Of a DNA stretch of 64,000 nt, positions 42,330 to 50,665 are shown piece after piece. The notes below the pieces were generated by a model, which had not been told where the DNA came from, ran no database searches, and saw nothing but the letters and a program-made list of their open reading frames with translations. Both the position numbers and the translations under genes were made by a program. Location of the stretch: the sequence record LR756501.1; one strand, 5' to 3'. How positions within the stretch are numbered: the first letter of the stretch is position 1; each line of letters starts with the position of its first letter.

Positions 42330-42351
42330 TAATTCAATTATTTATTTTTTG

Positions 42352-42424
42352 AGCCGGTGAGAGGACTTGAACCTCCAACATCTACTTTACGAAAGTAACG
42401 TTCTCCCAATTGAACTACACCGGC
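42352..42424 (-). tRNA. tRNA-Thr(CGT), isolated from the array
   Basis: Full cloverleaf: GCCGGTG/CACCGGC, loop TT-CGT-AA, TTCAAGT. Confidence 0.93.
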
Positions 42425-42431
42425 TTAATTC

Positions 42432-42770
42432 TTAGAAATCAATATTAAGATAATCACCGAACCATCTACTCTTCTTAACCACTTTTATAATTGGTTTCTC
42501 CATCCATTGTTTTCTGTTTTTAGAAACCAATTTCCAGCTTGGGTGACGAACTTTTTTTGGAGATGGTGTCCAAATAGTCAAATTTGGACTTGGTGAATAT
42601 CTCCAGAATTTTAAAGTCCCGTAGGATTTTCTTTCGTCATTTTCTCCTCTGTGATAACCACAACGTGAACAGTGAATCTCACCTTTTTGTTCGAGATAAA
42701 TCTTTCTTGAACGGTTATAGACATATCTGTTATCAGTAATGTCCATTTCTACTTTACATTTGTAACTCAT
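42432..42770 (-). CDS. hypothetical protein
   Basis: 112-aa ORF, CSRCGYHRGEN...PSWKLVSK.RKQW. Confidence 0.6.
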   Translation of the reverse strand: MSYKCKVEMDITDNRYVYNRSRKIYLEQKGEIHCSRCGYHRGENDERKSYGTLKFWRYSPSPNLTIWTPSPKKVRHPSWKLVSKNRKQWMEKPIIKVVKKSRWFGDYLNIDF

Positions 42771-42854
42771 AGGTTTTTCGATTAGTTTTTAATACTTACC
42801 GAAAAACCTCTCCTTTCTTATTCATAACTGTATATATTTTATTTTAAAGTTATA

Positions 42855-43760
42855 TTACATCCATTTCTTAAATTTGAAATACGAAAACATTCCAATTATC
42901 ATAGCTAACATTAAACCACCTAGATACATATAAAATTGATCGTGATCCTGAAAAGGTATTTTAATATTCATACCGTAAAGATTAGCTAAGAACGATATAG
43001 GTAACAAAATTGAAGATACTAAAGCTAAAATCTTCATCACTTCATTCGTCTTATTCACCTGCAAAGAGTCAAATGTTGTGCTGTAACCTTTAATAAGTTC
43101 ACCAGCGTCTTCAACAGTGTCCCATATATTCTGGTAATAGTCATGTATATTACCCCAATAATTTCCCATATCTTCAGCAAATCCTCTAATCGCCCCATTA
43201 GTTAGTTTACTAAAAATAGCCAACTGTGGTTTGAACATTGTATTCATCACAATAACATTTTTTCTAGTAATACTAATATGTTCAATTATCTTTTCAGCTC
43301 TTTTACCAAAGATAGATTTACCACATTTATCAACCTCTTCGTCAATCCTATCAACTAATTGCTGAGTAGCCTTCATAACTTTATCAAGTAAAGTATAGAG
43401 AAGCATATCAGAACTTGTTACTACCATTCTTTTATCAGGTGTTAAGGATTTTTCCTTATCAAATTCTTGAGTAAACAACCAATGTGTTTTACCAATAGTT
43501 ACAAGAAAATTGTTACCCCAAAATATTTTTACCTCTTTAATATCTACTACTGTTCCAGATTTATCTATATACGGAAAATGTAAATTTAAGAAGTAGTAAC
43601 CGTCATATGTATCAACCTTCGGATGAAGACTATTTGTTTTACAGTCTTCCATAGCAAGAGGGTGAAAATTATAAGCGTCTTTTATTTCTGTAAATTCTGC
43701 GTTAGTTGGTTTAACAAGATGTTCCCACGTAACACCGCCATAGTTTATTCTTCCAATCAT
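42855..43760 (-). CDS. corA: CorA family Mg2+/Co2+ transporter
   Basis: FHPLAMED, PKVD.Y, NEVMKIL, LYGMN, two C-terminal TM helices. Confidence 0.92.
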   Translation of the reverse strand: MIGRINYGGVTWEHLVKPTNAEFTEIKDAYNFHPLAMEDCKTNSLHPKVDTYDGYYFLNLHFPYIDKSGTVVDIKEVKIFWGNNFLVTIGKTHWLFTQEFDKEKSLTPDKRMVVTSSDMLLYTLLDKVMKATQQLVDRIDEEVDKCGKSIFGKRAEKIIEHISITRKNVIVMNTMFKPQLAIFSKLTNGAIRGFAEDMGNYWGNIHDYYQNIWDTVEDAGELIKGYSTTFDSLQVNKTNEVMKILALVSSILLPISFLANLYGMNIKIPFQDHDQFYMYLGGLMLAMIIGMFSYFKFKKWM

Positions 43761-43769
43761 ATCTTTTTA

Positions 43770-44306
43770 TTAATGTTTAAGTGGTCTATGATAATTTGGT
43801 GCTGGCGATGGATGATCTTTTTTTATTATTCTATTAACTCCCTCTATAATAAATAAAGTGTTTTTAAATCTATCGTTTCCTGATTCACCGAATGCTGCTA
43901 ATGTAGAATACCATTTATGATTTAATTCATTCGAATATTTAACTAAACATACAATAGTATCGTCTTTTCTAGCTGATGGACACATAGATGAAGCTAATAA
44001 ATAGTCTGGTTCAGGAGTTGGAAAAGATGTGCTTTTAGCTCTTAAATAAAATACAGTTTCTTCACCGTGTCTGCCCTCCAATTTATAGACTTCATTTGTA
44101 ACTAACATCTTCACGTTAATTTCTCTAATGTTTTCATATTTCATCTTATCATGAAAAGCACAAGTGGTCATCATTGTAGAAAACATCAAAAACATGAAAC
44201 TTAACATTATCACAGGAAAGAAATCTCTTCTCTTTTTGGGCACCACAGGAGGAGCGTCGTTCCAATCCTCTTCCCCGTAGGGATCTATAACTTTTTTATT
44301 ATCCAT
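43770..44306 (-). CDS. membrane-anchored hypothetical protein with N-terminal DPYGEEDW motif
   Basis: IDPYGEEDWND then hydrophobic segment. Confidence 0.6.
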   Translation of the reverse strand: MDNKKVIDPYGEEDWNDAPPVVPKKRRDFFPVIMLSFMFLMFSTMMTTCAFHDKMKYENIREINVKMLVTNEVYKLEGRHGEETVFYLRAKSTSFPTPEPDYLLASSMCPSARKDDTIVCLVKYSNELNHKWYSTLAAFGESGNDRFKNTLFIIEGVNRIIKKDHPSPAPNYHRPLKH

Positions 44307-44529
44307 ATATGCTATATCCTTGAATAATATAAACTTTTACTGGTAAAGGGTTTACTTTTTTAGTATTAAACCATCTATTACGACCATTGACCCTATCAAT
44401 CAATAATTGTTTAGTTAAATAAACACCCTTGTAAAATTCAAAAGCTTGTTGTTCAGTTTCAAATTCTGGAACCACATCAACATATTTACTAAGACCTAGA
44501 TATACGTTCTTTATTTTCATTATACTCAA
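44299..44529 (-). CDS. hypothetical protein
   Basis: 76-aa ORF. Confidence 0.5.
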   Translation of the reverse strand: MSIMKIKNVYLGLSKYVDVVPEFETEQQAFEFYKGVYLTKQLLIDRVNGRNRWFNTKKVNPLPVKVYIIQGYSIYG

Positions 44530-44683
44530 TAAACTGCTGTTCCCTAATCTTATATTGAAGTCCTTTCATTTCACTAAGAACTTCTTCCAAATAGTCGAAA
44601 TCCATCGCGTAATGATCACCGATGAATTTCATTTGGAATATCACTTCCTTGCATAAAGCCTCATACCTGTCAAATATATCCAT
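44489..44683 (-). CDS. hypothetical protein
   Basis: 64-aa ORF. Confidence 0.45.
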   Translation of the reverse strand: MDIFDRYEALCKEVIFQMKFIGDHYAMDFDYLEEVLSEMKGLQYKIREQQFIEYNENKERISRS

Positions 44684-45497
44684 AATTTATGTAATTTAGA
44701 AATTTTTGTATTTCTTTTTCTAAATATTCTTTATTCACTTCATTTATTGGATTCTTCCATTTTATCCTATAAACCTTTATTCCAACATCTTCTAACAATT
44801 TATCCCTCACTATGTCCTTTTCTTTTCTATCTTTGTAAGAGTGTTGTTTACCATCAATTTCCAAATCAATTTTCTTATCCTCGAAATAAAAGTCTAAAAA
44901 ATAATTACTTATATCATTTAATCCCAAATCCCTTTTACTTATTACAAAGTTTTGTTTGTATTCCAATTTGTTATTTTTCAATACTTCAATGAAAAACTTT
45001 TCTGGGTATGATATTATATTCCTACTTGTCCAACCTTTATGTGTTCCGTTTCTGACTTTTTCTTTAACATTCAAACTTAGATTTTTTTTCATTCCTAATT
45101 TTGAACAAATATCACTACAATATTCTTGTTGTGATAATTTTCCATTTTCAATTCTTGTAACTATAAAAACATCGCCACACTCTTTACAATTTCTTTTATA
45201 TTCTTTAAGTGCTTTTTTGCCTCCTCTATCTATTCTTTTTAAACTTAAACTTGTTTTTGATTTTTGTTCATCAGTGATTATTCTATTTTTATTATTATAA
45301 GAAGCCGAACAAGAACTAGAACAAAATTTATTTTTTCTTTTATCGTAAGGCAATGAATTATTACAATTCAAACATAAATTGGGGTTATTATTATATTTTT
45401 CAACCCTTTTGTTTTTAATTTCTTGTATTTTTCTATTACCCAATACAGAAGCTTTTTTAGCATTTTCTATATGATATTCAGATCCAATATAATTCAT
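44670..45497 (-). CDS. freestanding endonuclease, DUF559/Vsr-like PD-(D/E)XK with Cys-rich zinc modules (putative homing endonuclease)
   Basis: CLNC...FCSSSC, CKEC...YCSDIC; SYPEK, YFLDF, IDLEIDGKQH, RD..L...G.KV.RI.W. Confidence 0.8.
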   Translation of the reverse strand: MNYIGSEYHIENAKKASVLGNRKIQEIKNKRVEKYNNNPNLCLNCNNSLPYDKRKNKFCSSSCSASYNNKNRIITDEQKSKTSLSLKRIDRGGKKALKEYKRNCKECGDVFIVTRIENGKLSQQEYCSDICSKLGMKKNLSLNVKEKVRNGTHKGWTSRNIISYPEKFFIEVLKNNKLEYKQNFVISKRDLGLNDISNYFLDFYFEDKKIDLEIDGKQHSYKDRKEKDIVRDKLLEDVGIKVYRIKWKNPINEVNKEYLEKEIQKFLNYINYGYI

Positions 45498-45565
45498 ATA
45501 AACTTTTATATTTATATATAAACATAAAAAAGTCAGTTTTTTCTGTTTTGAACCTAAATCCTTGT

Positions 45566-45634
45566 AGCAGATGTCGGACTTGAACCGCTACCCTTGCTCC
45601 CAAAGCAAGTATGTTACCATTACACCACATCCGC
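45566..45634 (-). tRNA. tRNA-Pro(TGG), T-arm one base short
   Basis: GCGGATG/CATCTGC, CTTGC-TT-TGG-GA-GCAAG. Confidence 0.7.
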
Positions 45635-45642
45635 TGTTTTTG

Positions 45643-45715
45643 TGACCCCAGTTGGATTCAAACCAACGACTTTCACTTTAGAAGAGTGACACTCTATTCG
45701 CTGAGTTATGAGGCC
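45643..45715 (-). tRNA. tRNA-Arg(TCT)
   Basis: Full cloverleaf, TCACT-CT-TCT-AA-AGTGA. Confidence 0.92.
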
Positions 45716-45801
45716 GTTATTATTCTATAAATATATATAAATTAAGCGTTACACTATTTCGACAATCATTTGGCTTTTACCCACACACCCCTTTTTGAGT
45801 A

Positions 45802-45868
45802 GGGCGGAGAAAGATTCGGACTTTCATTTCCTTGCTAGTGAGGCAGGCTGGGTTTCCATTATCCAACT
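45802..45868 (-). pseudogene. degenerate tRNA-Val(CAC)-like remnant
   Basis: D, anticodon (CT-CAC-TA) and T arms recognisable; acceptor strands do not pair. Confidence 0.3.
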
Positions 45869-45965
45869 TGATTTAGCGTCATTTCCTTTCTTTAATTTTA
45901 GTTTCTTATTACAAATATACGACAAAGTTTTAATATAAAAAAATCAATTTTGATTTATTATTTTG

Positions 45966-46042
45966 TGACCCAGAGGGGATTCGAACCCATATTTTCATCC
46001 GTTATGCACGTGGAGTTTAGAAGACTCTGCCATTACAGGGCC
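45966..46042 (-). ncRNA. atypical tRNA-Arg(TCT)-like RNA: no D-arm, long variable insert
   Basis: GGCCCTG/CTGGGTC acceptor, GAGT-CT-TCT-AA-ACTC, about 22-nt insert, TTCGAAT T-loop. Confidence 0.6.
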
Positions 46043-46045
46043 ATA

Positions 46046-46115
46046 TACAGAATGCTTTTTTTCTACAAATTACAAGTTTGTTGCTTATTAAAGCTTTTGG
46101 TTGCTGTGAGCATTC
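46046..46115 (-). ncRNA. ACAGCAA-stem element
   Basis: GAATGC-TCACAGCAA...GCATTC-TGTA. Confidence 0.7.
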
Positions 46116-46117
46116 AT

Positions 46118-46202
46118 TGGAGCGGCTAGTGAGAATCGAACTCACATCCTCGGTTTGGAAGACCGACATAATCTGCTTTTGGCTCCATTATACGATAGCC
46201 GC
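46118..46202 (-). tRNA. tRNA-Gly(TCC) with about 12-nt D-loop insertion
   Basis: GCGGCTA/TAGCCGC-T-CCA, TCGGT-CT-TCC-AA-ACCGA. Confidence 0.8.
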
Positions 46203-46323
46203 GTAAGTTGGGCGTTCTCTTTTATCCTTCGTCTGTTGGAGCACTAAGTAAAATCCTAATGGCAACACGTTGATGGGAAGGGCGAGAACATTGATGGTTT
46301 CACCTATTATACCAACCACCCTG

Positions 46324-46422
46324 AGCGAAGAAAAGGATTCGAACCTTTGACTACCCACCAAATTCATCTGCACTTAAACAGTATGGCTGATCATGGCAAT
46401 TTTCCCACTAAACTACCTCCGC
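46324..46422 (-). ncRNA. tRNA-like RNA with 33-nt expanded anticodon loop
   Basis: Acceptor GCGGAGG/TCTTCGC, D and T arms normal, TGCCA/TGGTG enclosing 33 nt. Confidence 0.65.
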
Positions 46423-46430
46423 AATATTTG

Positions 46431-46502
46431 AGCGAATAGTGGGACTCAAACCCACGACCCTTTGCTTGGGAAGCAAATATTCTATCACTGAACTATACTC
46501 GC
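46431..46502 (-). tRNA. tRNA-Gly(CCC)
   Basis: Full cloverleaf, TTTGC-TT-CCC-AA-GCAAA, U73. Confidence 0.92.
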
Positions 46503-46506
46503 AATG

Positions 46507-46578
46507 AGCGAAAGAAGGGAATCGAACCCTCATATCCAGCTTGGAAGGCTGGAGTAATAGCCTTTATACTACTTTCGC
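46507..46578 (-). tRNA. tRNA-Gly(TCC)
   Basis: Full cloverleaf, CCAGC-CT-TCC-AA-GCTGG. Confidence 0.92.
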
Positions 46579-46582
46579 ATTG

Positions 46583-46654
46583 AGCAAGAGATGAGAATCG
46601 AACTCACATCCTCGGCTTGGCAAGCCGACGTACTAACCATTGTACTACTCCTGC
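46583..46654 (-). tRNA. tRNA-Gly(GCC)
   Basis: Full cloverleaf, TCGGC-TT-GCC-AA-GCCGA. Confidence 0.93.
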
Positions 46655-46658
46655 GTGT

Positions 46659-46717
46659 TACAGAATACTTTTTATTCACTTTTTGGAAGAAAGTTTTTTA
46701 TTTGCTGTAAGTATTCT
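46659..46717 (-). ncRNA. ACAGCAA-stem element
   Basis: AGAATAC-TTACAGCAA...GTATTCT-GTAA; perfect 7-bp stem. Confidence 0.7.
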
Positions 46718-46721
46718 TTGT

Positions 46722-46809
46722 TTTCAGATTACTATGTTGTGACGATTTGAACGCCTTAGAACAATTTTCAGTTGTTTTGTTTACCTTTTGGTTTTGCTGT
46801 GAGTAATCT
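46722..46809 (-). ncRNA. ACAGCAA-stem element
   Basis: AGATTAC-TCACAGCAA...GTAATCT-GAAAA; perfect 7-bp stem. Confidence 0.7.
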
Positions 46810-46813
46810 ATTT

Positions 46814-47002
46814 TTACCATTTTAAGTTTGCCGCCTTAAATCTTTTTTCGAAATCAGTAAAAGTGAACCAATTGTTACAATCTATACCGCCTTCTTTTTT
46901 CTTTTTAATATGAACACAAATCGAATTTGACGTCATATCCACGATGGTACATGTACTGCCATCTAAATCTGTAATTATCTGACCTATTCCATAATTTTCC
47001 AT
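46814..47002 (-). CDS. hypothetical protein within the tRNA array
   Basis: 62-aa ORF. Confidence 0.55.
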   Translation of the reverse strand: MENYGIGQIITDLDGSTCTIVDMTSNSICVHIKKKKEGGIDCNNWFTFTDFEKRFKAANLKW

Positions 47003-47021
47003 GACGTCTATTTTTTAATAT

Positions 47022-47237
47022 TTATTTTACTGGTTTATCTGGTAATGGCATCCAATGAGTGATTCCCATATTTGTCCAACCTTTTGTTGGTCCATCTAAA
47101 TTATCACCAAAATATATAGCCACCATAATACCTATTGTAGATGGACTATAAGCCAAAACGTGCTCACAAGTTTTCCAAGTTTTTCCTATTTGTGATTCTG
47201 GTAAAGCCTCTTCTATTGAAATCCATTTTGTTTCCAT
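47022..47237 (-). CDS. DUF551-like phage protein
   Basis: WISIEEALPE...ITHWMPLPDKP. Confidence 0.75.
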   Translation of the reverse strand: METKWISIEEALPESQIGKTWKTCEHVLAYSPSTIGIMVAIYFGDNLDGPTKGWTNMGITHWMPLPDKPVK

Positions 47238-47252
47238 GACTATTAATTTTAG

Positions 47253-47327
47253 TGGAGATGGCCGGGTTCGAACCGGCTACCTTTTGCCTGCCAGGCAAAC
47301 GCTCTCAACCTACTGAGCTACATCCCC
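47253..47327 (-). tRNA. tRNA-Ala(GGC)
   Basis: Full cloverleaf, G3:U70, A73. Confidence 0.93.
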
Positions 47328-47404
47328 ATAGTCCTGCGTGTTACCATTAATCACTACCGACCCCTGAGGGGCCAGGTGGGGATCGAACCCACATCTCAGG
47401 ATTT
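47328..47404 (-). ncRNA. circularly permuted tRNA (3' half before 5' half, break in anticodon loop)
   Basis: AAA-TCCTG-AGAT-GTGGG-TTCGATC-CCCAC-CTGGCCCC-TCA-GGGGTCGG-TA-GTG-ATTAATGGTAA-CAC-G-CAGGA-CTAT. Confidence 0.75.
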
Positions 47405-47479
47405 TGGTGGAAAGAATGAGATTCGAAATCATACCGCCCCAGCATCCACCGGGGTCTTCTAACATTAAACTACCTTCCC
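47405..47479 (-). ncRNA. tRNA-like RNA with non-canonical anticodon loop
   Basis: GGGAAGG/TCTTTCC-A-CCA, CCCCGG-TGGATG-CTGGGG arm. Confidence 0.55.
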
Positions 47480-48355
47480 ATATAAATTCTTCAACTCTAA
47501 TATATCGATGAACTTATTTACTGTTTCTTTATAATATTTACCATGTCTTTCATCGAAATCTTCGATTCTTTTTTCTAATTCTTCTAAGGTTATTGAACAA
47601 TCATCACATTTACTTTGATTATTCCTATTTACAATCAATTCACAATTTGCGGGATGAGCTAATAATAATGGGCTTATTAATCTTCGAAATCCCTCTCTTA
47701 CTGAAAACATGTGATCTCTACTAACACCATTTACATTATTTCCTCTGTTTTTTGCGCTATACCACCCATATTTTTCAACTAATTTAAAATCAAATTCATA
47801 ATCCTTTAATGAAAACTTAAATCCTGATAAATCATGATACATTTTATAATCTGACATATTTTTTAAATAATATTCTTTCTTACATTTTGCATTACAATAT
47901 GTTCTATTTCTAAATTTATATTCTAATATTTCATTACAATTTAAACATTTATTAGGGTTATCATAATATATTGATTTCTCTTTTAAATATAAGTCTTTTT
48001 TATCAAATAAGAAATTCTTATAGGCTGAATCAATTAAAGCATTTCTACCTTCATCAGTTAAATTGTATTTTGTTCCTTTTCTTTTTTTGTTATTAATAAT
48101 AGCTGAGCATTTATGACTACAAAAATTACCATTGTCTTGTATTTTATCGTATGGTATAATACTTTCACAATTTTTACAAATCTTTGGACTAGATAAATAT
48201 ATTACTTCATTCTCATATCTTTTTTGTTTGAATGTTTCTTTTACCTTATCATAATTTCTAATATATTTATTAACATAAATATTTCTACATTTCAATGAAC
48301 AATAAATATTTTTACCATTGGTTTCATTTTCACATTCAAGATTTTTACACTTCAT
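47465..48355 (-). CDS. HNH-like endonuclease with Cys-rich zinc modules (putative homing endonuclease)
   Basis: Three CxxC...(Y/F)CxxxC repeats; SRDHMFSV...HPANCELI...N..K. Confidence 0.75.
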   Translation of the reverse strand: MKCKNLECENETNGKNIYCSLKCRNIYVNKYIRNYDKVKETFKQKRYENEVIYLSSPKICKNCESIIPYDKIQDNGNFCSHKCSAIINNKKRKGTKYNLTDEGRNALIDSAYKNFLFDKKDLYLKEKSIYYDNPNKCLNCNEILEYKFRNRTYCNAKCKKEYYLKNMSDYKMYHDLSGFKFSLKDYEFDFKLVEKYGWYSAKNRGNNVNGVSRDHMFSVREGFRRLISPLLLAHPANCELIVNRNNQSKCDDCSITLEELEKRIEDFDERHGKYYKETVNKFIDILELKNLYGKVV

Positions 48356-48432
48356 TTTTATTTATTTATTTTCTATTATATATCAAATAAATAAAGTGGA
48401 GTTTTTCCATAATGAAACCTGTTTTAAAATAG

Positions 48433-48507
48433 TGGAGCGTGCGATATTCGAAATCGCCTGATATCAACATTGCAAGTGTTGTGACCACCCTAGCAGTCCC
48501 ACGCCCC
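48433..48507 (-). tRNA. tRNA-Ala(TGC)
   Basis: GGGGCGT/ACGCTCC, G3:U70, CAACA-CT-TGC-AA-TGTTG. Confidence 0.88.
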
Positions 48508-48513
48508 ATTGTG

Positions 48514-48588
48514 TGTTCCTCACAGGAATCGAACCTGCAACCTTCTCCACGTCAAGGAGATGCTCTGAGCCAATTGAGCTAAAGGAAC
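48514..48588 (-). tRNA. tRNA-Val(GAC)
   Basis: Full cloverleaf, TCTCC-TT-GAC-GT-GGAGA. Confidence 0.92.
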
Positions 48589-48594
48589 ATTTTG

Positions 48595-48679
48595 TAGGAC
48601 TACCCAGATTCGAACTGGGATTATACTTCGCGTCTCCACTTTGTAGGAGTGGGATGTTTAACCGTTACACCATAGTCCT
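48595..48679 (-). tRNA. tRNA-Val(TAC) with C33 and long variable region
   Basis: AGGACTA/TAGTCCT, CCACT-CC-TAC-AA-AGTGG, 16-nt variable region. Confidence 0.75.
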
Positions 48680-48742
48680 ATATTTGAATTTCTATATATC
48701 CTTCCTGTACGAGGCTTATGAAATTCTAACAGTTTCCCCTTG

Positions 48743-48815
48743 AGCCGAAGGTGGGTAACGATCCCACTACCTTGTCCTTACCAAGGACACGCTCTACCAT
48801 CTGAGCTACTACGGC
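48743..48815 (-). tRNA. tRNA-Thr(GGT)
   Basis: Full cloverleaf, TGTCC-TT-GGT-AA-GGACA. Confidence 0.9.
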
Positions 48816-48818
48816 ATT

Positions 48819-48906
48819 TGGAGCCTGGTGTAGGATTCAAACCTACGAGGGGCCGAAGCCCTCCTGATTACAAGTCAGGTCGAATCGATCACTATCGGAA
48901 CCAGGC
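48819..48906 (-). tRNA. tRNA-Thr(TGT) with long variable arm
   Basis: GCCTGGT/ACCAGGC-T-CCA, CCTGA-CT-TGT-AA-TCAGG, GGGC-TTCG-GCCC arm. Confidence 0.82.
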
Positions 48907-49029
48907 ATACGGTGGGACAACGTTTTATATTTTAAACTACCGGCTCGCAAATTGAGTTTTACTGATTATCTATTTTATCAGGCTCAACCTTTGAGCGGGG
49001 TGGGCGTTTCACCCACATCAAAGCCCCCG

Positions 49030-49101
49030 AGCCGATGGAGGGATTTGAACCCCCGACAGGTAGTTTACAAAACTACTACTCTACCCCTGAGTTACATCGG
49101 C
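49030..49101 (-). tRNA. tRNA-Thr(TGT)
   Basis: Full cloverleaf, GTAGT-TT-TGT-AA-ACTAC. Confidence 0.93.
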
Positions 49102-49198
49102 ATTTGGCAATAAAGTGTGAGACAATTTGAAGAACCTTGTTGTTTGAACATCTCACTACCTTTATTGCCGGTGGGTATTTTACGTTCAAAGAACTAAT

Positions 49199-49304
49199 TG
49201 GTGAATGAAACGGGGTTTACACCCGCACGTGGAGATTATCAAGTCATTTCTATATCCACGCCAGTCTTGCTTGCCTGGTGCGTCTTTTGTTTCCGCCACT
49301 CATT
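49199..49304 (-). ncRNA. Leu-type tRNA-like RNA with aberrant anticodon loop and very long variable arm
   Basis: GCG-GAAACAAAAGA-CGC D-arm, CCAG/CTGG with 10-nt loop, CGTGGA/TCCACG arm, encoded ACCA. Confidence 0.55.
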
Positions 49305-49306
49305 TG

Positions 49307-49417
49307 AGCCTGCAGTAGGACTTGAACCTACCTTTCTAATCCTTAAAAAACCTCACATCGTGCCTAGGACTTCAGAACCGGTTTAAGATTAGATTTGTCT
49401 GCCACTCGACCTCAGGC
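49307..49417 (-). ncRNA. tRNA-like RNA with greatly extended anticodon hairpin
   Basis: GCCTG/CAGGC acceptor, GTC/GAC D-arm, TCTAATC/GATTAGA enclosing about 45 nt, GTAGG-TTCAAGT-CCTAC. Confidence 0.65.
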
Positions 49418-49422
49418 ATTTG

Positions 49423-49524
49423 TGGACTTGATGAGAATTGAACTCACTTGGGATGCCTCCCTTTTCCTAACCCTGCTCGGACCCCACCGATCAATGCTTT
49501 CGACAACATTACACAAACAAGCCC
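49423..49524 (-). ncRNA. tRNA-like RNA with Ala identity (G3:U70, A73) and no canonical anticodon loop
   Basis: GGGCTTG/CAAGTCC-A, TCGG-TGGGGT-CCGA, GGGA-GGCA-TCCC, normal T-arm. Confidence 0.55.
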
Positions 49525-49533
49525 ATTTTATTG

Positions 49534-49605
49534 TGACCCCAACAGAAATCGAATCTGTATTGTATGTTTAGGAAACATATTTCCTATCCGTTGGAAGATG
49601 GGGCC
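49534..49605 (-). tRNA. tRNA-Arg(CCT)
   Basis: Full cloverleaf, TATGT-TT-CCT-AA-ACATA. Confidence 0.9.
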
Positions 49606-49609
49606 GTAT

Positions 49610-49704
49610 GATATGGCAAGAGACCTTTACTCTGCTTCCCTGGGCAAGCCTTTCGAGCTGCCCCGGGTGGGATTCGAACCCAAATTTAACGATATTGCCA
49701 TATC
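49610..49704 (-). ncRNA. YrlA/Y-RNA-like permuted tRNA mimic
   Basis: 10-bp closing stem GATATGGCAA/TTGCCATATC enclosing T-arm TGGG-TTCGAAT-CCCA, loop-closed acceptor-like stem, D-like hairpin. Confidence 0.65.
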
Positions 49705-49708
49705 TTTG

Positions 49709-49777
49709 TGGATCTTCGGGATTTGAACCCGCCCTTTTGTTTGCGAGACAAACGTGCCTCCCTTACACTTTAGACCC
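49709..49777 (-). tRNA. tRNA-Ala(CGC), slightly degenerate
   Basis: G3:U70, TTTGT-CT-CGC-AA-ACAAA. Confidence 0.75.
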
Positions 49778-49845
49778 ATATTTTATGAGTCCTTGGCATC
49801 CCTTCTTTTATCTCGAGAACTAAAGAAAGGCACTTCCGGACCCTG

Positions 49846-50010
49846 TGGAGTAAGTGGGATTCGAACCCACACCGCTGAAGACTAGTAACTCGCTTCCCTT
49901 GCTCATTCTTTTTTCACCACCTCAACATAAGGTCGCTATAGGTGCATCCGCAATTCGTCATTCAATCAGGTTATCGTTGCCTGTACAGACCGCCACTCTG
50001 TTGTTACCCC
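49846..50010 (-). ncRNA. 165-nt Ala-acceptor RNA, possible mini-tmRNA
   Basis: GGGGTAA/TTACTCC-A (G3:U70), T-arm GTGGG-TTCGAAT-CCCAC, about 130-nt insert containing GGC AAC GAT AAC CTG ATT GAA TGA. Confidence 0.5.
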
Positions 50011-50016
50011 AATTTG

Positions 50017-50103
50017 TCTAAGTGAGAGGACTCGAACCTCCAGAGTTATATTAACACTCGCTTCCAAGGCGAGATCGCTATCCAATTACGGGCTTACACC
50101 TAG
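50017..50103 (-). tRNA. tRNA-Pro(TGG) with long variable arm
   Basis: CTAGGTG/CACTTAG-A (C1-G72, A73), CTCGC-CT-TGG-AA-GCGAG, GTTA-ATA-TAAC arm. Confidence 0.82.
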
Positions 50104-50109
50104 ATATAG

Positions 50110-50183
50110 TGACCCTAGAAGGATTCAAACCTTCAGCCTCTTGATTCGTAGTCAAGTGCGCTATTCAGTTGCGCCATAGGGCC
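50110..50183 (-). tRNA. tRNA-Arg(ACG)
   Basis: Full cloverleaf, CTTGA-CT-ACG-AA-TCAAG. Confidence 0.93.
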
Positions 50184-50189
50184 AATTTG

Positions 50190-50262
50190 TGCCCCCGAAA
50201 GGATTTGAACCTTTATCGCAGATTCCGAAGATCTGAATTCTCTTCCGTTGAACTACGGAGGC
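50190..50262 (-). tRNA. tRNA-Arg(TCG)
   Basis: Full cloverleaf, CAGAT-CT-TCG-GA-ATCTG. Confidence 0.92.
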
Positions 50263-50279
50263 TATGGCTTTATTTCAAG

Positions 50280-50291
50280 ATGTCAAAGAAC
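50280..50291 (-). promoter_or_regulatory. rrn-type boxA antitermination site (second copy 49184-49194)
   Basis: GTTCTTTGACAT 18 nt before the first tRNA; GTTCTTTGAAC mid-array. Confidence 0.6.
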
Positions 50292-50324
50292 TAAAAATAT
50301 TTGAAAAGAACAAAAAACCCTTAT

Positions 50325-50359
50325 AAAACAAAACACCCAAAAACTTTCGCCTTTGGGTG
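50325..50359 (-). terminator. attenuator terminator of the tRNA operon leader
   Basis: CACCCAAA-GGCGAAAGTT-TTTGGGTG followed by TTTTGTTTT. Confidence 0.8.
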
Positions 50360-50407
50360 TGGGTGCCAGTCTAAATTTTCTGGCTTATGTTGAGGTATAA
50401 GGGGGCT

Positions 50408-50536
50408 TTATCCATTCATACCTTCAAACCCACACCCTGCTGGCACACATGTGCCGGTGCCTGTTCCCGTGCCGCGTCTAAACGCTACTGCGGGGGCTGG
50501 TGTAAATTTTACAGATATGTTTGAATTGAATAACAT
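50408..50536 (-). CDS. 42-aa attenuator leader peptide (not in ORF track)
   Basis: AGGAG SD; MLFNSNISVKFTPAPAVAFRRGTGTGTGTCVPAGCGFEGMNG; codons 34-37 (GGGTGTGGGT) are the exact complement of the terminator 5' side (ACCCACACCC). Confidence 0.8.
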   Translation of the reverse strand: MLFNSNISVKFTPAPAVAFRRGTGTGTGTCVPAGCGFEGMNG

Positions 50537-50665
50537 ATTAATTTTCTCCTTTTTGTTTAGTTATATATTCATGGAAAAAAGTCATTTTTTTCCATTTTTA
50601 ATTTGTATTACAAATTTACGCTAAAGTTTGCGATTAAAAAAATTATTTGATGATTATTTTTAAAA

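Follow-up and report, generated by a model that had tools for sequence, protein, structure and literature searches.

What might a short, structured leader be doing in front of a viral array of transfer RNA (tRNA) genes whose members read the very codons that the leader contains? The question is raised by a stretch of 64,000 nucleotides (hereafter the window, meaning the whole of that stretch), which covers positions 317061-381060 of LR756503.1, is found identically in LR756501.1 and has an N count of 0. The record is an unannotated, uncultured phage genome of 735,411 bp; this 735-kb genome is one of those reported by Al-Shayeb et al. 2020 and belongs to the Mahaphage clade, with a Bacteroidetes host that is only predicted (PMC7162821). 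Assemblies of such phages exist in JGI 3300028283, 3300045006 and 3300042261 and in runs SRR8437273/4. An earlier note, made from the letters of the window, had proposed a leader-peptide attenuator with codons matching the downstream array, and this proposal is now backed by paralogues, by composition switches in relatives and by co-varying antiterminator and terminator arms. The element is most probably a ribosome-mediated transcription attenuator, one of at least five paralogues that would each act between a phage promoter and one tRNA array. What is seen directly is its anatomy, its repetition and the match of codons to array, which covaries from lineage to lineage, along with alternative helices that have changed in a compensating manner. 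The parts of the window's element, in window coordinates and with lineages A to D standing for the window's own lineage and its closest relatives, are the following:

50561-50594, minus strand: phage promoter-like motif, consisting of an inverted repeat TGGAAAAAAATGACTTTTTTCCA, 2 nucleotides and then AATATATAA
50546-50550, minus strand: AGGAG, 9 nucleotides 5′ of the leader ATG, kept in lineages A-D
50408-50536, minus strand: leader open reading frame (ORF) of 42 codons plus TAA, peptide MLFNSNISVKFTPAPAVAFRRGTGTGTGTCVPAGCGFEGMNG
50435-50503, minus strand: putative sensing core, codons 12-34 (TPAPAVAFRRGTGTGTGTCVPAG), with Thr, Pro, Ala, Val, Arg or Gly in 21 of 23 codons
50499-50509, minus strand: segment 1, AAATTTACACC, a possible anti-antiterminator by its pairing to segment 2
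50428-50437, minus strand: segment 2, GGGTGTGGGT, codons 34-37, the 5′ strand of the predicted antiterminator
50365-50423, minus strand: spacer separating segment 2 from segment 3, containing the stop codon and two hairpins (AGGTAT..ATACCT and GCCAG..CTGGC), near-invariant in lineages A-D
50355-50364, minus strand: segment 3, ACCCACACCC, a perfect complement of segment 2, with 6 nucleotides in common with the terminator 5′ arm
50323-50360, minus strand: predicted intrinsic terminator (3:4), with a 12-bp stem ACACCCAAAGGC/GTTTTTGGGTGT including G-U pairs, a GAAA loop and a T-rich tail
50271-50312, minus strand: two boxA-like motifs, TGTTCTTTTCAAA at 50312-50300 and GTTCTTTGACATCTTGAAATA at 50291-50271
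50262-50189, minus strand: first tRNA, Arg(tcg), called by ARAGORN
45564-50262, minus strand: the array most plausibly under the attenuator, in which 15 standard tRNA calls (Arg, Thr, Val, Ala, Gly, Pro) are joined by further tRNA-like RNAs and broken up by three ORFs

The ORF described by the note is present at 50536-50408 on the minus strand, with its AGGAG at 50550-50546, and 21 of the 23 codons from 12 to 34 do specify the six amino acids named. The array was said to serve exactly these six, and the 16 tRNAs called by ARAGORN in the window (42351-50262, minus strand) agree, being for Arg, Thr, Val, Ala, Gly and Pro only. The use of GC-rich codons in an AT-rich genome is likewise borne out, with a G+C content at third codon positions (GC3) of 0.48 in the core and 0.23 in genes. 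The further statement that each of the Thr, Ala and Gly codons used has a cognate tRNA in the window needs qualification for two of them. For GCG, standard ARAGORN gives no Ala(cgc), and a relaxed ARAGORN call of Ala(cgc) at 49708-49778 coincides with an Rfam tRNA match of 39.3 bits; for ACG, the cognate Thr(cgt) is in the window, at a distance of 8 kb and outside the likely transcription unit. Residues belonging to the leader's own array set account for 25 of 41 (binomial P 4e-6), and the run RRGTGTGTGT has a P of ~2.5e-5, the amino-acid background here and for the paralogues being that of the 48 long ORFs of the window. The 100-nucleotide bin 50400-50499 has 60% GC in a genome of ~30% GC, and plus-strand ORFs of 45 and 57 codons overlap the same patch. 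Because this GC-rich patch is open in other frames too, the open frame proves nothing by itself; the window ORF taken alone could be a by-product of composition, and the case depends on paralogues and relatives.

The alternative RNA structures that the note had drawn are recovered as well. Segments 2 and 3 are perfect complements over 10 nucleotides (GGGTGTGGGT, 50437-50428, and ACCCACACCC, 50364-50355), and neither has a further exact copy in the window. Their duplex reaches -26.1 kcal/mol, against -14.4 +/- 3.0 kcal/mol for shuffled upstream sequence, and one of 500 shuffles equaled it. A terminator scan places a hairpin of 12 pairs with a loop of 4 at 50360-50333, followed by TTTGTTTTAT (-17.4 kcal/mol), so that the U-tailed terminator lies within a base of its claimed position; after it come, as claimed, a boxA-like motif (GTTCTTTGACA, 50291-50281) and Arg(tcg). 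The minimum free energy (MFE) fold of 50560-50300 (minus strand) has -83.6 kcal/mol (z -4.3) and contains the terminator together with segment 2 paired to AAAUUUACACC, which is codons 10-13 plus the final base of codon 9. Folding thus returns the 1:2, 2:3 and 3:4 geometry, and it does so in different combinations: a fold of 241 nucleotides gives 2:3, and one of 261 nucleotides gives 1:2 plus the terminator. Since two slightly different lengths have two different outcomes, the alternatives in the window leader must be near in energy.

The same arrangement recurs elsewhere in the genome. The whole record was scanned with ARAGORN in 50-kb pieces and has 59 tRNAs by standard settings (huge phages have up to 67 per genome; Al-Shayeb et al., PMC7162821), almost all on the same strand and sorted into arrays by amino acid. 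The ARAGORN arrays and their leaders are:

Arr1: Glu, Ile(tat), Met, Gln; leader MNFRIINMIQEQMQQIQNLIGGTISY, with core IINMIQEQMQQIQ before Ile/Met/Gln/Glu; segments 2/3 CTGATTGG/CCAATCAG
Arr2: Asp, Tyr, Ile(gat), Asn, Cys, headed by an L7/L12-like gene; leader MKNMVRKYNDYCINDKLKMLIG, with core YNDYCIND before Tyr/Asn/Asp/Cys/Ile; segments 2/3 as in Arr1
Arr3: Leu, five genes; leader MNNILHINLLNSLCLLGIKLIG, with seven Leu codons that include all six synonyms; segments 2/3 TGATTGGGT/ACCCAATCA
Arr4: Lys, Trp, Ser, Phe, His; leader MLQTSKHSKHFSSSSKWFTTFGVETDLLCVS, with core SKHSKHFSSSSKWF before Lys/His/Ser/Phe/Trp; segments 2/3 TTCGGGGTT/AACCCCGAA
Arr5 (small): Pro(ggg) and two odd calls
Arr6 (the array of the window): Arg, Thr, Val, Ala, Gly, Pro

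Each of the five large arrays has one module, made up of the promoter motif, a short ORF, a U-tailed terminator, a copy of the antiterminator in the 3′ end of the ORF and a boxA-like motif; beyond the window, these modules lie 5′ of Arr1, Arr3 and Arr4 and 5′ of the L7/L12-like gene heading Arr2. All five leader ORFs stop with TAA or TGA, and, of the five, only the window's leader has the AGGAG Shine-Dalgarno sequence, which is missing in all four paralogues. When the five leaders are scored against the five arrays, the true assignment reaches 72, more than any other of the 120 permutations (mean 30.2). The longest runs of own-set residues are 10, 8, 14 and 10 residues long, with P values of 1e-5, 7e-4, <5e-6 and 2.5e-5. 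In the Leu leader, 7 of 21 residues are Leu (P 7e-4) and all six Leu codons are used (P 0.0035 given gene usage). At the codon level, with simple wobble rules, the diagonal of the matrix is again highest, except for the Leu leader, which has 8 codons readable by Arr2 and 7 readable by its own array.

The paralogous leaders also have the alternative helices. Segment 2 lies at codons 18-25 in the paralogues (34-37 in the window), and the LIG at the C-terminus of three leaders is there because segment 2 complements the terminator 5′ arm. The five paralogues use three unrelated arm sequences that are complementary within each, and these therefore give independent support for the alternative helices. 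Compared with shuffled upstream sequence, the 2:3 duplexes of the five leaders have P values of 0.04, 0.52, 0.01, 0.000 and 0.002, and the terminator hairpins of 12 leaders range from -12.5 to -23.0 kcal/mol, all with T-tails. If the nascent RNA is folded as far as segment 3, four leaders adopt the 2:3 fold, and the remaining one does so once its ORF is masked; with segment 4 included, the MFE structure is the terminator form in the Arr1-4 leaders. The end of the core and segment 2 are 3-13 nucleotides apart. Judged by the usual size of the ribosome footprint, segment 2 would be left open by a ribosome paused at most of the core codons, and an advancing one would cover segment 2 or sit between segments 2 and 3.

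Close relatives of the window leader add a second line of evidence. Lineage B (L001 and L004-L007) is ~90% identical overall and has an identical leader peptide; window and lineage B differ at 3 of ~400 positions in 50250-50649 (two substitutions and a 1-base length difference), and the flanking genes and first two tRNAs diverge by ~10%. The homologue in lineage C has 36 amino acids (MLFNSNISTSFTPTAPVVRRGTGTGTSVPAGCGFVV) and was the sole match in a protein search with the peptide, and that in lineage D has 39 (MLFNSNISANFTPTAPAAMRRGTGTGTGTVVPVGCGIVV) and was reached via a neighbor-gene search. Between lineage A and lineages C or D, third codon positions take 11 of 20 and 13 of 23 changes (P 0.035 and 0.017), and the indels in the leader ORF of C and D are of 3 and 6 nucleotides. 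Segment 3 is identical in C and D, as is segment 2 apart from its last base in lineage D, and the spacer between them is almost without change across lineages. In the terminator stem of C and D, A-T has become G-C on both arms with pairing kept; in segment 1, a change from TTT to TTC turns a G-U pair into G-C (by eye).

A search of viral contigs with the 15-mer CTGGCACCCACACCC gave 70 unrelated chance matches and one true relative, and a gapped 2:3 pattern gave one relative and one GC-rich chance match. The VWA-like neighbor protein led to 80 loci, of which L082 alone was related and seven others that were checked had no tRNAs. Among the viral contigs, the upstream 136-amino-acid protein has no relatives and the terminator pattern of Arr1/Arr3 has no match. 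In lineages D and C, a conserved, GC-rich structured RNA of ~150 nucleotides lies between the terminator and the first tRNA, with boxA-like motifs on both sides (L082:13025-13185 and L009:10228-10392). RNAalifold gives it -37.8 kcal/mol with two compensatory pairs; it matches no Rfam family and is absent from the window lineage.

A wider comparison is offered by a phage homologue of ribosomal protein L7/L12 (Pfam PF16320 and PF00542), encoded between the Arr2 leader and the Arr2 tRNAs (L165:37959-38330, minus strand, which is LR756503.1 187959-188330) and apparently placed under the Arr2 attenuator as well. It has ~40 phage relatives at 56-82% identity, after which identity drops to 39%. Seven loci with such relatives were compared, and their tRNA-linked leaders include:

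L177: core YNINDCIYND; array Ile, Cys, Asp, Asn, Tyr (plus Lys, Val)
L178: core YNDYCIND; array Tyr, Cys, Asp, Asn
L183: core CKYNDYSIND; array Lys, Ile, Cys, Asn, Tyr
L179 and L180: core QNIQNMIINQI; array Asn, Met, Gln (in L180 also Ile)
L178, second array: core YLNLLDLLLEY; four tRNA-Leu
L179, second array: core LYYLYLYLY; mixed Tyr and Leu tRNAs

When backgrounds are measured ones, the best score goes to an array set of the leader's own class in 13 of 14 cases; only the Arr1 leader departs from this, doing slightly better with Ile/Asn/Met/Gln, a set that is nearly identical. Over the 14 leaders, own-set residues number 169 against 64.9 expected. In Arr2-type leaders substitutions occur at all codon positions, yet the residues stay in the set, a pattern that would fit regulatory codons and would not be that of an independently functional peptide. 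That leader codons should covary with array content had been set beforehand as a test, and four further modules and the switches in relatives agree with it. The arrays of L178 and L183 have an EF-G-like gene behind them.

The helices change along with the leaders, with compensation among segments 2, 3 and 4. The segments 2/3/4 CTGATTGG/CCAATCAG/TGATTGGG have become CCGATTGG/CCAATCGG/CG(G/A)TTGGG in L179 and L180 and CTGATAGG/CCTAATCAG/GATAGGGGG in L183; in the Leu leader of L178, CTGATTGG/CCAATCAG is replaced by GGATTGGGT/ACCCAATCC. A six-sequence alignment has the antiterminator paired in 97.9% of cells, compared with 5-56% when the partner is slid, with one pair changed on both sides, and the terminator paired in 85% of cells, with two pairs changed on both sides. 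Given the few lineages, these covariation counts are modest.

What stands upstream and downstream of the switch is equally repetitive. The promoter-like motif is also present before the leaders of arrays 1-4 and before several protein genes, and lineages B, C and D have kept it, as have the relatives' L7/L12-linked leaders; its consensus in leaders is an inverted repeat, A6-7 NGAC T5-8, and then AATATATA. Before protein-coding genes, the form A5-7 (A/C)TGAC (A/T)T4-5, a few bases and (A/T)ATATATA was seen at window 45526-45542 (minus strand), L163:26365, L166:43426, L167:34930 and L168:44600. The upstream motif thus appears to be a general phage promoter-like element and no part of the sensor. 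The copy at 45542-45526 (minus strand), as the next promoter motif, may mark the downstream end of the governed unit. No phage promoter motif was found between terminator and array at any array, and a promoter between the terminator and the first tRNA was rejected on this ground. Of 39 hairpin-plus-T-run sites genome-wide, those with the promoter motif 5′ and a boxA-like motif 3′ together are in tRNA leaders only.

The gamma-proteobacterial boxA consensus is GYTCTTTAANA (PMC5725501); the host here is only predicted, and its own boxA may differ. The Arr3 copy, GTTCTTTAACA, matches this consensus perfectly, the window copy GTTCTTTGACA and the Arr2 copy GTTCTTTGAAA have 1 mismatch each, and a GTTCTT(T/A)(G/A)A motif lies 3′ of the terminators in arrays 1-4 too. 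Allowing 2 mismatches, GTTCTTTGACA is no more frequent in the window than expected by chance, and a role as general promoter was rejected since it is not over-represented there. Because motif frequency alone is at chance level, the evidence for boxA is its recurrence in the same place in all five modules. It may provide Nus-type processivity for long structured arrays, with Nus-factor binding being putative.

From these arrangements we infer leader translation, termination, the synchrony of ribosome and polymerase, a role for boxA and a physiological trigger, as follows. Transcription would start just 3′ of the AATATATA box, and a ribosome would translate the short leader ORF, the middle of which is written in the codons that the tRNAs of the following array read. 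When decoding is quick, the ribosome would arrive at the 3′ end of the ORF and cover segment 2 or sit inside the 2-3 loop, leaving segment 3 free to pair with segment 4, so that the U-tailed terminator would form and the array would stay silent. A shortage of any one of the tested aminoacyl-tRNAs would stall the ribosome in the core with segment 2 free; this could then pair with the emerging segment 3, no terminator would form and RNA polymerase would continue past the boxA-like motif, where it would probably gain Nus-type processivity, to transcribe the tRNAs. The net effect would be that each tRNA group represses its own synthesis (negative feedback), and a complete failure of translation would leave the system ON by default.

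A number of observations weigh against this attenuator, or at least against its simplest form. At the most distant L7/L12 loci (L181:3773-3900 and L182:4765-4880), a leader-like ORF ending in FNGKIPIG and a terminator precede the L7/L12 gene, with no tRNAs nearby and no 2:3 pairing, and the 3′ part of the ORF copies the terminator 5′ arm instead of complementing it. The QNIM-type leader at L180:3759-3900 has one extra base compared with L179, which takes its ORF (54 codons) through the terminator region in another frame; this could be a true variant or an assembly error. The fit between codons and tRNAs has gaps as well: the Arr4 leader has the Ser codons TCT, TCA, TCC, AGT and AGC, but in its array standard ARAGORN finds, for Ser, Ser-cga only, and relaxed settings add Ser-gga; the ATT codons of the Arr1 leader are read by Ile-gat, which is encoded in Arr2; and the window's Thr(cgt), cognate of ACG, sits amid protein genes behind an internal promoter motif. 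Arr5 and both tRNA(cta) genes have no leader. With regard to structure, (i) the Arr2-type 2:3 helices have only 7-8 bp and are individually no better than shuffles (P 0.4-0.5), (ii) the stop codons of the Arr1, Arr4 and window leaders lie 6-9 codons past segment 2, and because they are so far beyond it, blocking of 2:3 depends on a ribosome inside the loop and not on direct masking, and (iii) segment 1, with its 1:2 pairing, was seen in the window and Leu leaders and in none of Arr1, Arr2 and Arr4. An untranslated leader that lacks segment 1 would read through, unlike in classical superattenuation. Finally, the conserved leader N-termini MLFNSNIS and MKNMV hint at a constraint beyond the model.

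If the attenuator is accepted, its trigger may still be of two kinds. The circuit is one that senses decoding speed, and depletion, demand and amino-acid starvation are indistinguishable to it; a missing tRNA and an uncharged one look the same from a stalled ribosome, as in the trp, his and leu attenuators. One version, which we hold only tentatively, is that a clade of huge phages carries a modular governor of tRNA supply that detects limiting tRNAs by group and re-supplies those, countering tRNA-cleaving defences and host shut-off with a fail-safe ON state. The same architecture could, with a likelihood that we put a little short of even, respond to ordinary supply and demand instead of defence-caused tRNA loss: the signals would be a codon usage of the AT-rich phage that is at odds with its host's, the rising demand of late expression or tRNAs left uncharged by starvation, and the leaders would be housekeeping governors or infection-stage timers. 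The leaders sample rare and common codons (all six for Leu, and a core GC3 well above that of genes), which fits the testing of every isoacceptor and not of one nuclease target, and one leader appears to control a ribosomal L7/L12 gene as well; no observation speaks against this version, which differs from the defence version in its trigger only.

Explanations that do without the attenuator altogether have to account for the same data. The short ORFs could encode functional small peptides, with the hairpin as their terminator and with promoters of the arrays' own, and the conserved N-termini with synonymous changes and the annotation of the 42-amino-acid ORF by gene callers in public assemblies would suit this; it is nevertheless improbable, as the promoter motif is 5′ of the ORFs and none was found between terminator and first tRNA, Arr2-type leaders reshuffle their residues within the set (KYNDYCIND, YNINDCIYND, CKYNDYSIND) and keep composition instead of sequence, the C-terminal LIG is explained by segment 2, a switch of array comes with a switch of leader composition, and a plain terminator has no need of its complement inside the ORF. 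A modified-peptide precursor, suggested by a Gly/Thr/Cys-rich core, was rejected, there being no adjacent modifying enzymes and quite different cores in the paralogues. An untranslated leader, whose triplets or whole RNA would be read directly by tRNAs or by a protein (T-box-like or protein-mediated antitermination), would agree with a window spacer that is better conserved than the ORF and with the several open frames of the GC-rich patch. It seems a shade less probable again than the peptide explanation: the leader has no match among Rfam families, T-box included, the triplets that fit the array keep to a single frame from ATG to stop throughout, ORF indels are multiples of three and third positions vary most, and runs of 8-14 cognate codons are the signature of sensing by ribosomes. 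There is, lastly, the possibility of chance, in which a GC-rich structured stretch yields Gly/Ala/Pro/Arg-rich frames by composition. The contrast between the 50400-50499 bin and the rest of the genome, and the two plus-strand ORFs across it, are what one would then expect in the window; the AT-rich leaders SKHSKHFSSSSKWF, YNDYCIND, IINMIQEQMQQIQ and LYYLYLYLY, each before a matching array, and the permutation and run statistics are left unexplained, and chance is hardly credible.

The arrays themselves hold several further features. Within the window array, the GC-rich gaps among the called tRNAs (49100-50110 and 45800-47480, minus strand) contain tRNA-like RNAs that standard ARAGORN does not see. 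Relaxed ARAGORN gives Ala(cgc) as above, Val(cac) at 45799-45869, Thr(tgt) at 46118-46202 and, at 50016-50103, a Pro(tgg) whose extra arm is long, and such extra calls are mostly within their own array's amino-acid set; Rfam has weak tRNA matches at some of these spots and a sub-threshold transfer-messenger RNA (tmRNA) match at 49420-49524. Protein ORFs inside the array (47465-48355, 47022-47237 and 44670-45497, minus strand) encode a Cys-rich 296-amino-acid protein, a DUF551 and a DUF559 protein (Pfam); all three resemble mobile or selfish insertions and are placed differently from lineage to lineage. Elsewhere, paired tRNA genes with the anticodon cta (amber-suppressor type, labeled Pyl by ARAGORN) lie without a leader module at LR756503.1 690585-690738 (L175:40585-40738, plus strand). 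Odd tRNA calls were made at L166:4243-4333 and L166:28902-29090, one of which has the four-base anticodon ttac or, read with an intron, tta, a stop-codon reader; the others are two near-identical tRNA-like genes of Arr5 with an anticodon call of two bases.

Something comparable was seen in LR745208.1, an unrelated 485-kb phage with 55% GC, in which MRFFTTTRTRTAGLTRKG (L184:14758-14842) precedes three tRNA-Thr and MNLSTHSTNTAPAATAACVVACVGPAAPPAA (L184:28564-28710) precedes tRNA-Pro and tRNA-Ala. These short ORFs, one Thr-rich and the other Ala/Pro-rich, each follow a TTGACA..TATACT box and have no clear U-tailed terminator. They could be an analogue of independent origin or else a product of their GC-rich composition, and are a hint that the principle might have arisen more than once. 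In the outgroup, Caulobacter phage CcrColossus, terminators stand before arrays and a matching leader was not found.

To our knowledge, the genes linked to leader-peptide attenuation are those of amino-acid biosynthesis and a small number of others, all protein-coding, and never tRNA genes. The earlier note knew of no described attenuator of a phage tRNA operon, and the literature search, whose coverage was incomplete, likewise found no attenuator or leader peptide controlling tRNA genes in phage or cell, nor any regulatory logic for large phage tRNA arrays; the paper describing this genome has no word with the stem 'attenuat' (PMC7162821). If the attenuator holds, feedback would close directly on the decoding molecules, in a virus and in at least five parallel channels, and the grouping of this phage's tRNAs by amino acid would be explained. 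It would also (i) provide a sequence-only rule for finding such regulators elsewhere, namely that the leader core equals the array content, (ii) make it testable with transcript data when and why large phages express tRNAs and (iii) offer compact natural sensors for the availability of defined tRNA sets.

Phage tRNA arrays are viewed as a compensation for codon usage or as a replacement of host tRNAs lost to infection or anticodon nucleases. The set described here is large, as in other large phages, and its expression appears to be conditional on need. The motif that heads a long operon of structured RNAs recalls rrn-type boxA/Nus antitermination, although here it comes after an attenuator and before tRNA arrays, and binding of NusB/NusE is putative. 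T-box riboswitches also act by antitermination according to the state of a particular tRNA, from a switch before translation-related genes. A T-box binds the tRNA directly, with no ribosome and a single specifier codon; the phage leaders have in-frame ORFs with runs of codons, and neither 50300-50650 (E up to 1) nor the leader of lineage D has a match in Rfam, T-box included. In pheST, a leader peptide with cognate codons (pheM) controls phenylalanyl-tRNA synthetase; the target is again in the translation apparatus, being a synthetase and not tRNAs, for one amino acid and in a cell.

The nearest likeness is to the enterobacterial trp, his, leu, thr, ilv and phe attenuators, which share with the phage leaders a short leader ORF rich in regulatory codons, an intrinsic terminator and a strand common to antiterminator and terminator, with the choice set by the position of the ribosome. 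A 1:2 pairing is predicted in the window's leader too, and the thr and ilv leaders are multivalent in the same way, mixing several amino acids. The phage leaders are unlike them in that the targets are tRNA genes and one L7/L12 gene, so that the loop would close on the decoding molecule; in being phage-borne, in at least five copies, with the whole tRNA set partitioned to match; and in that most copies are without segment 1 (the untranslated default being read-through) and have a boxA-like motif after the terminator. The proposed mechanism is classical; what is new is its target, its setting in a virus and its multi-channel layout.

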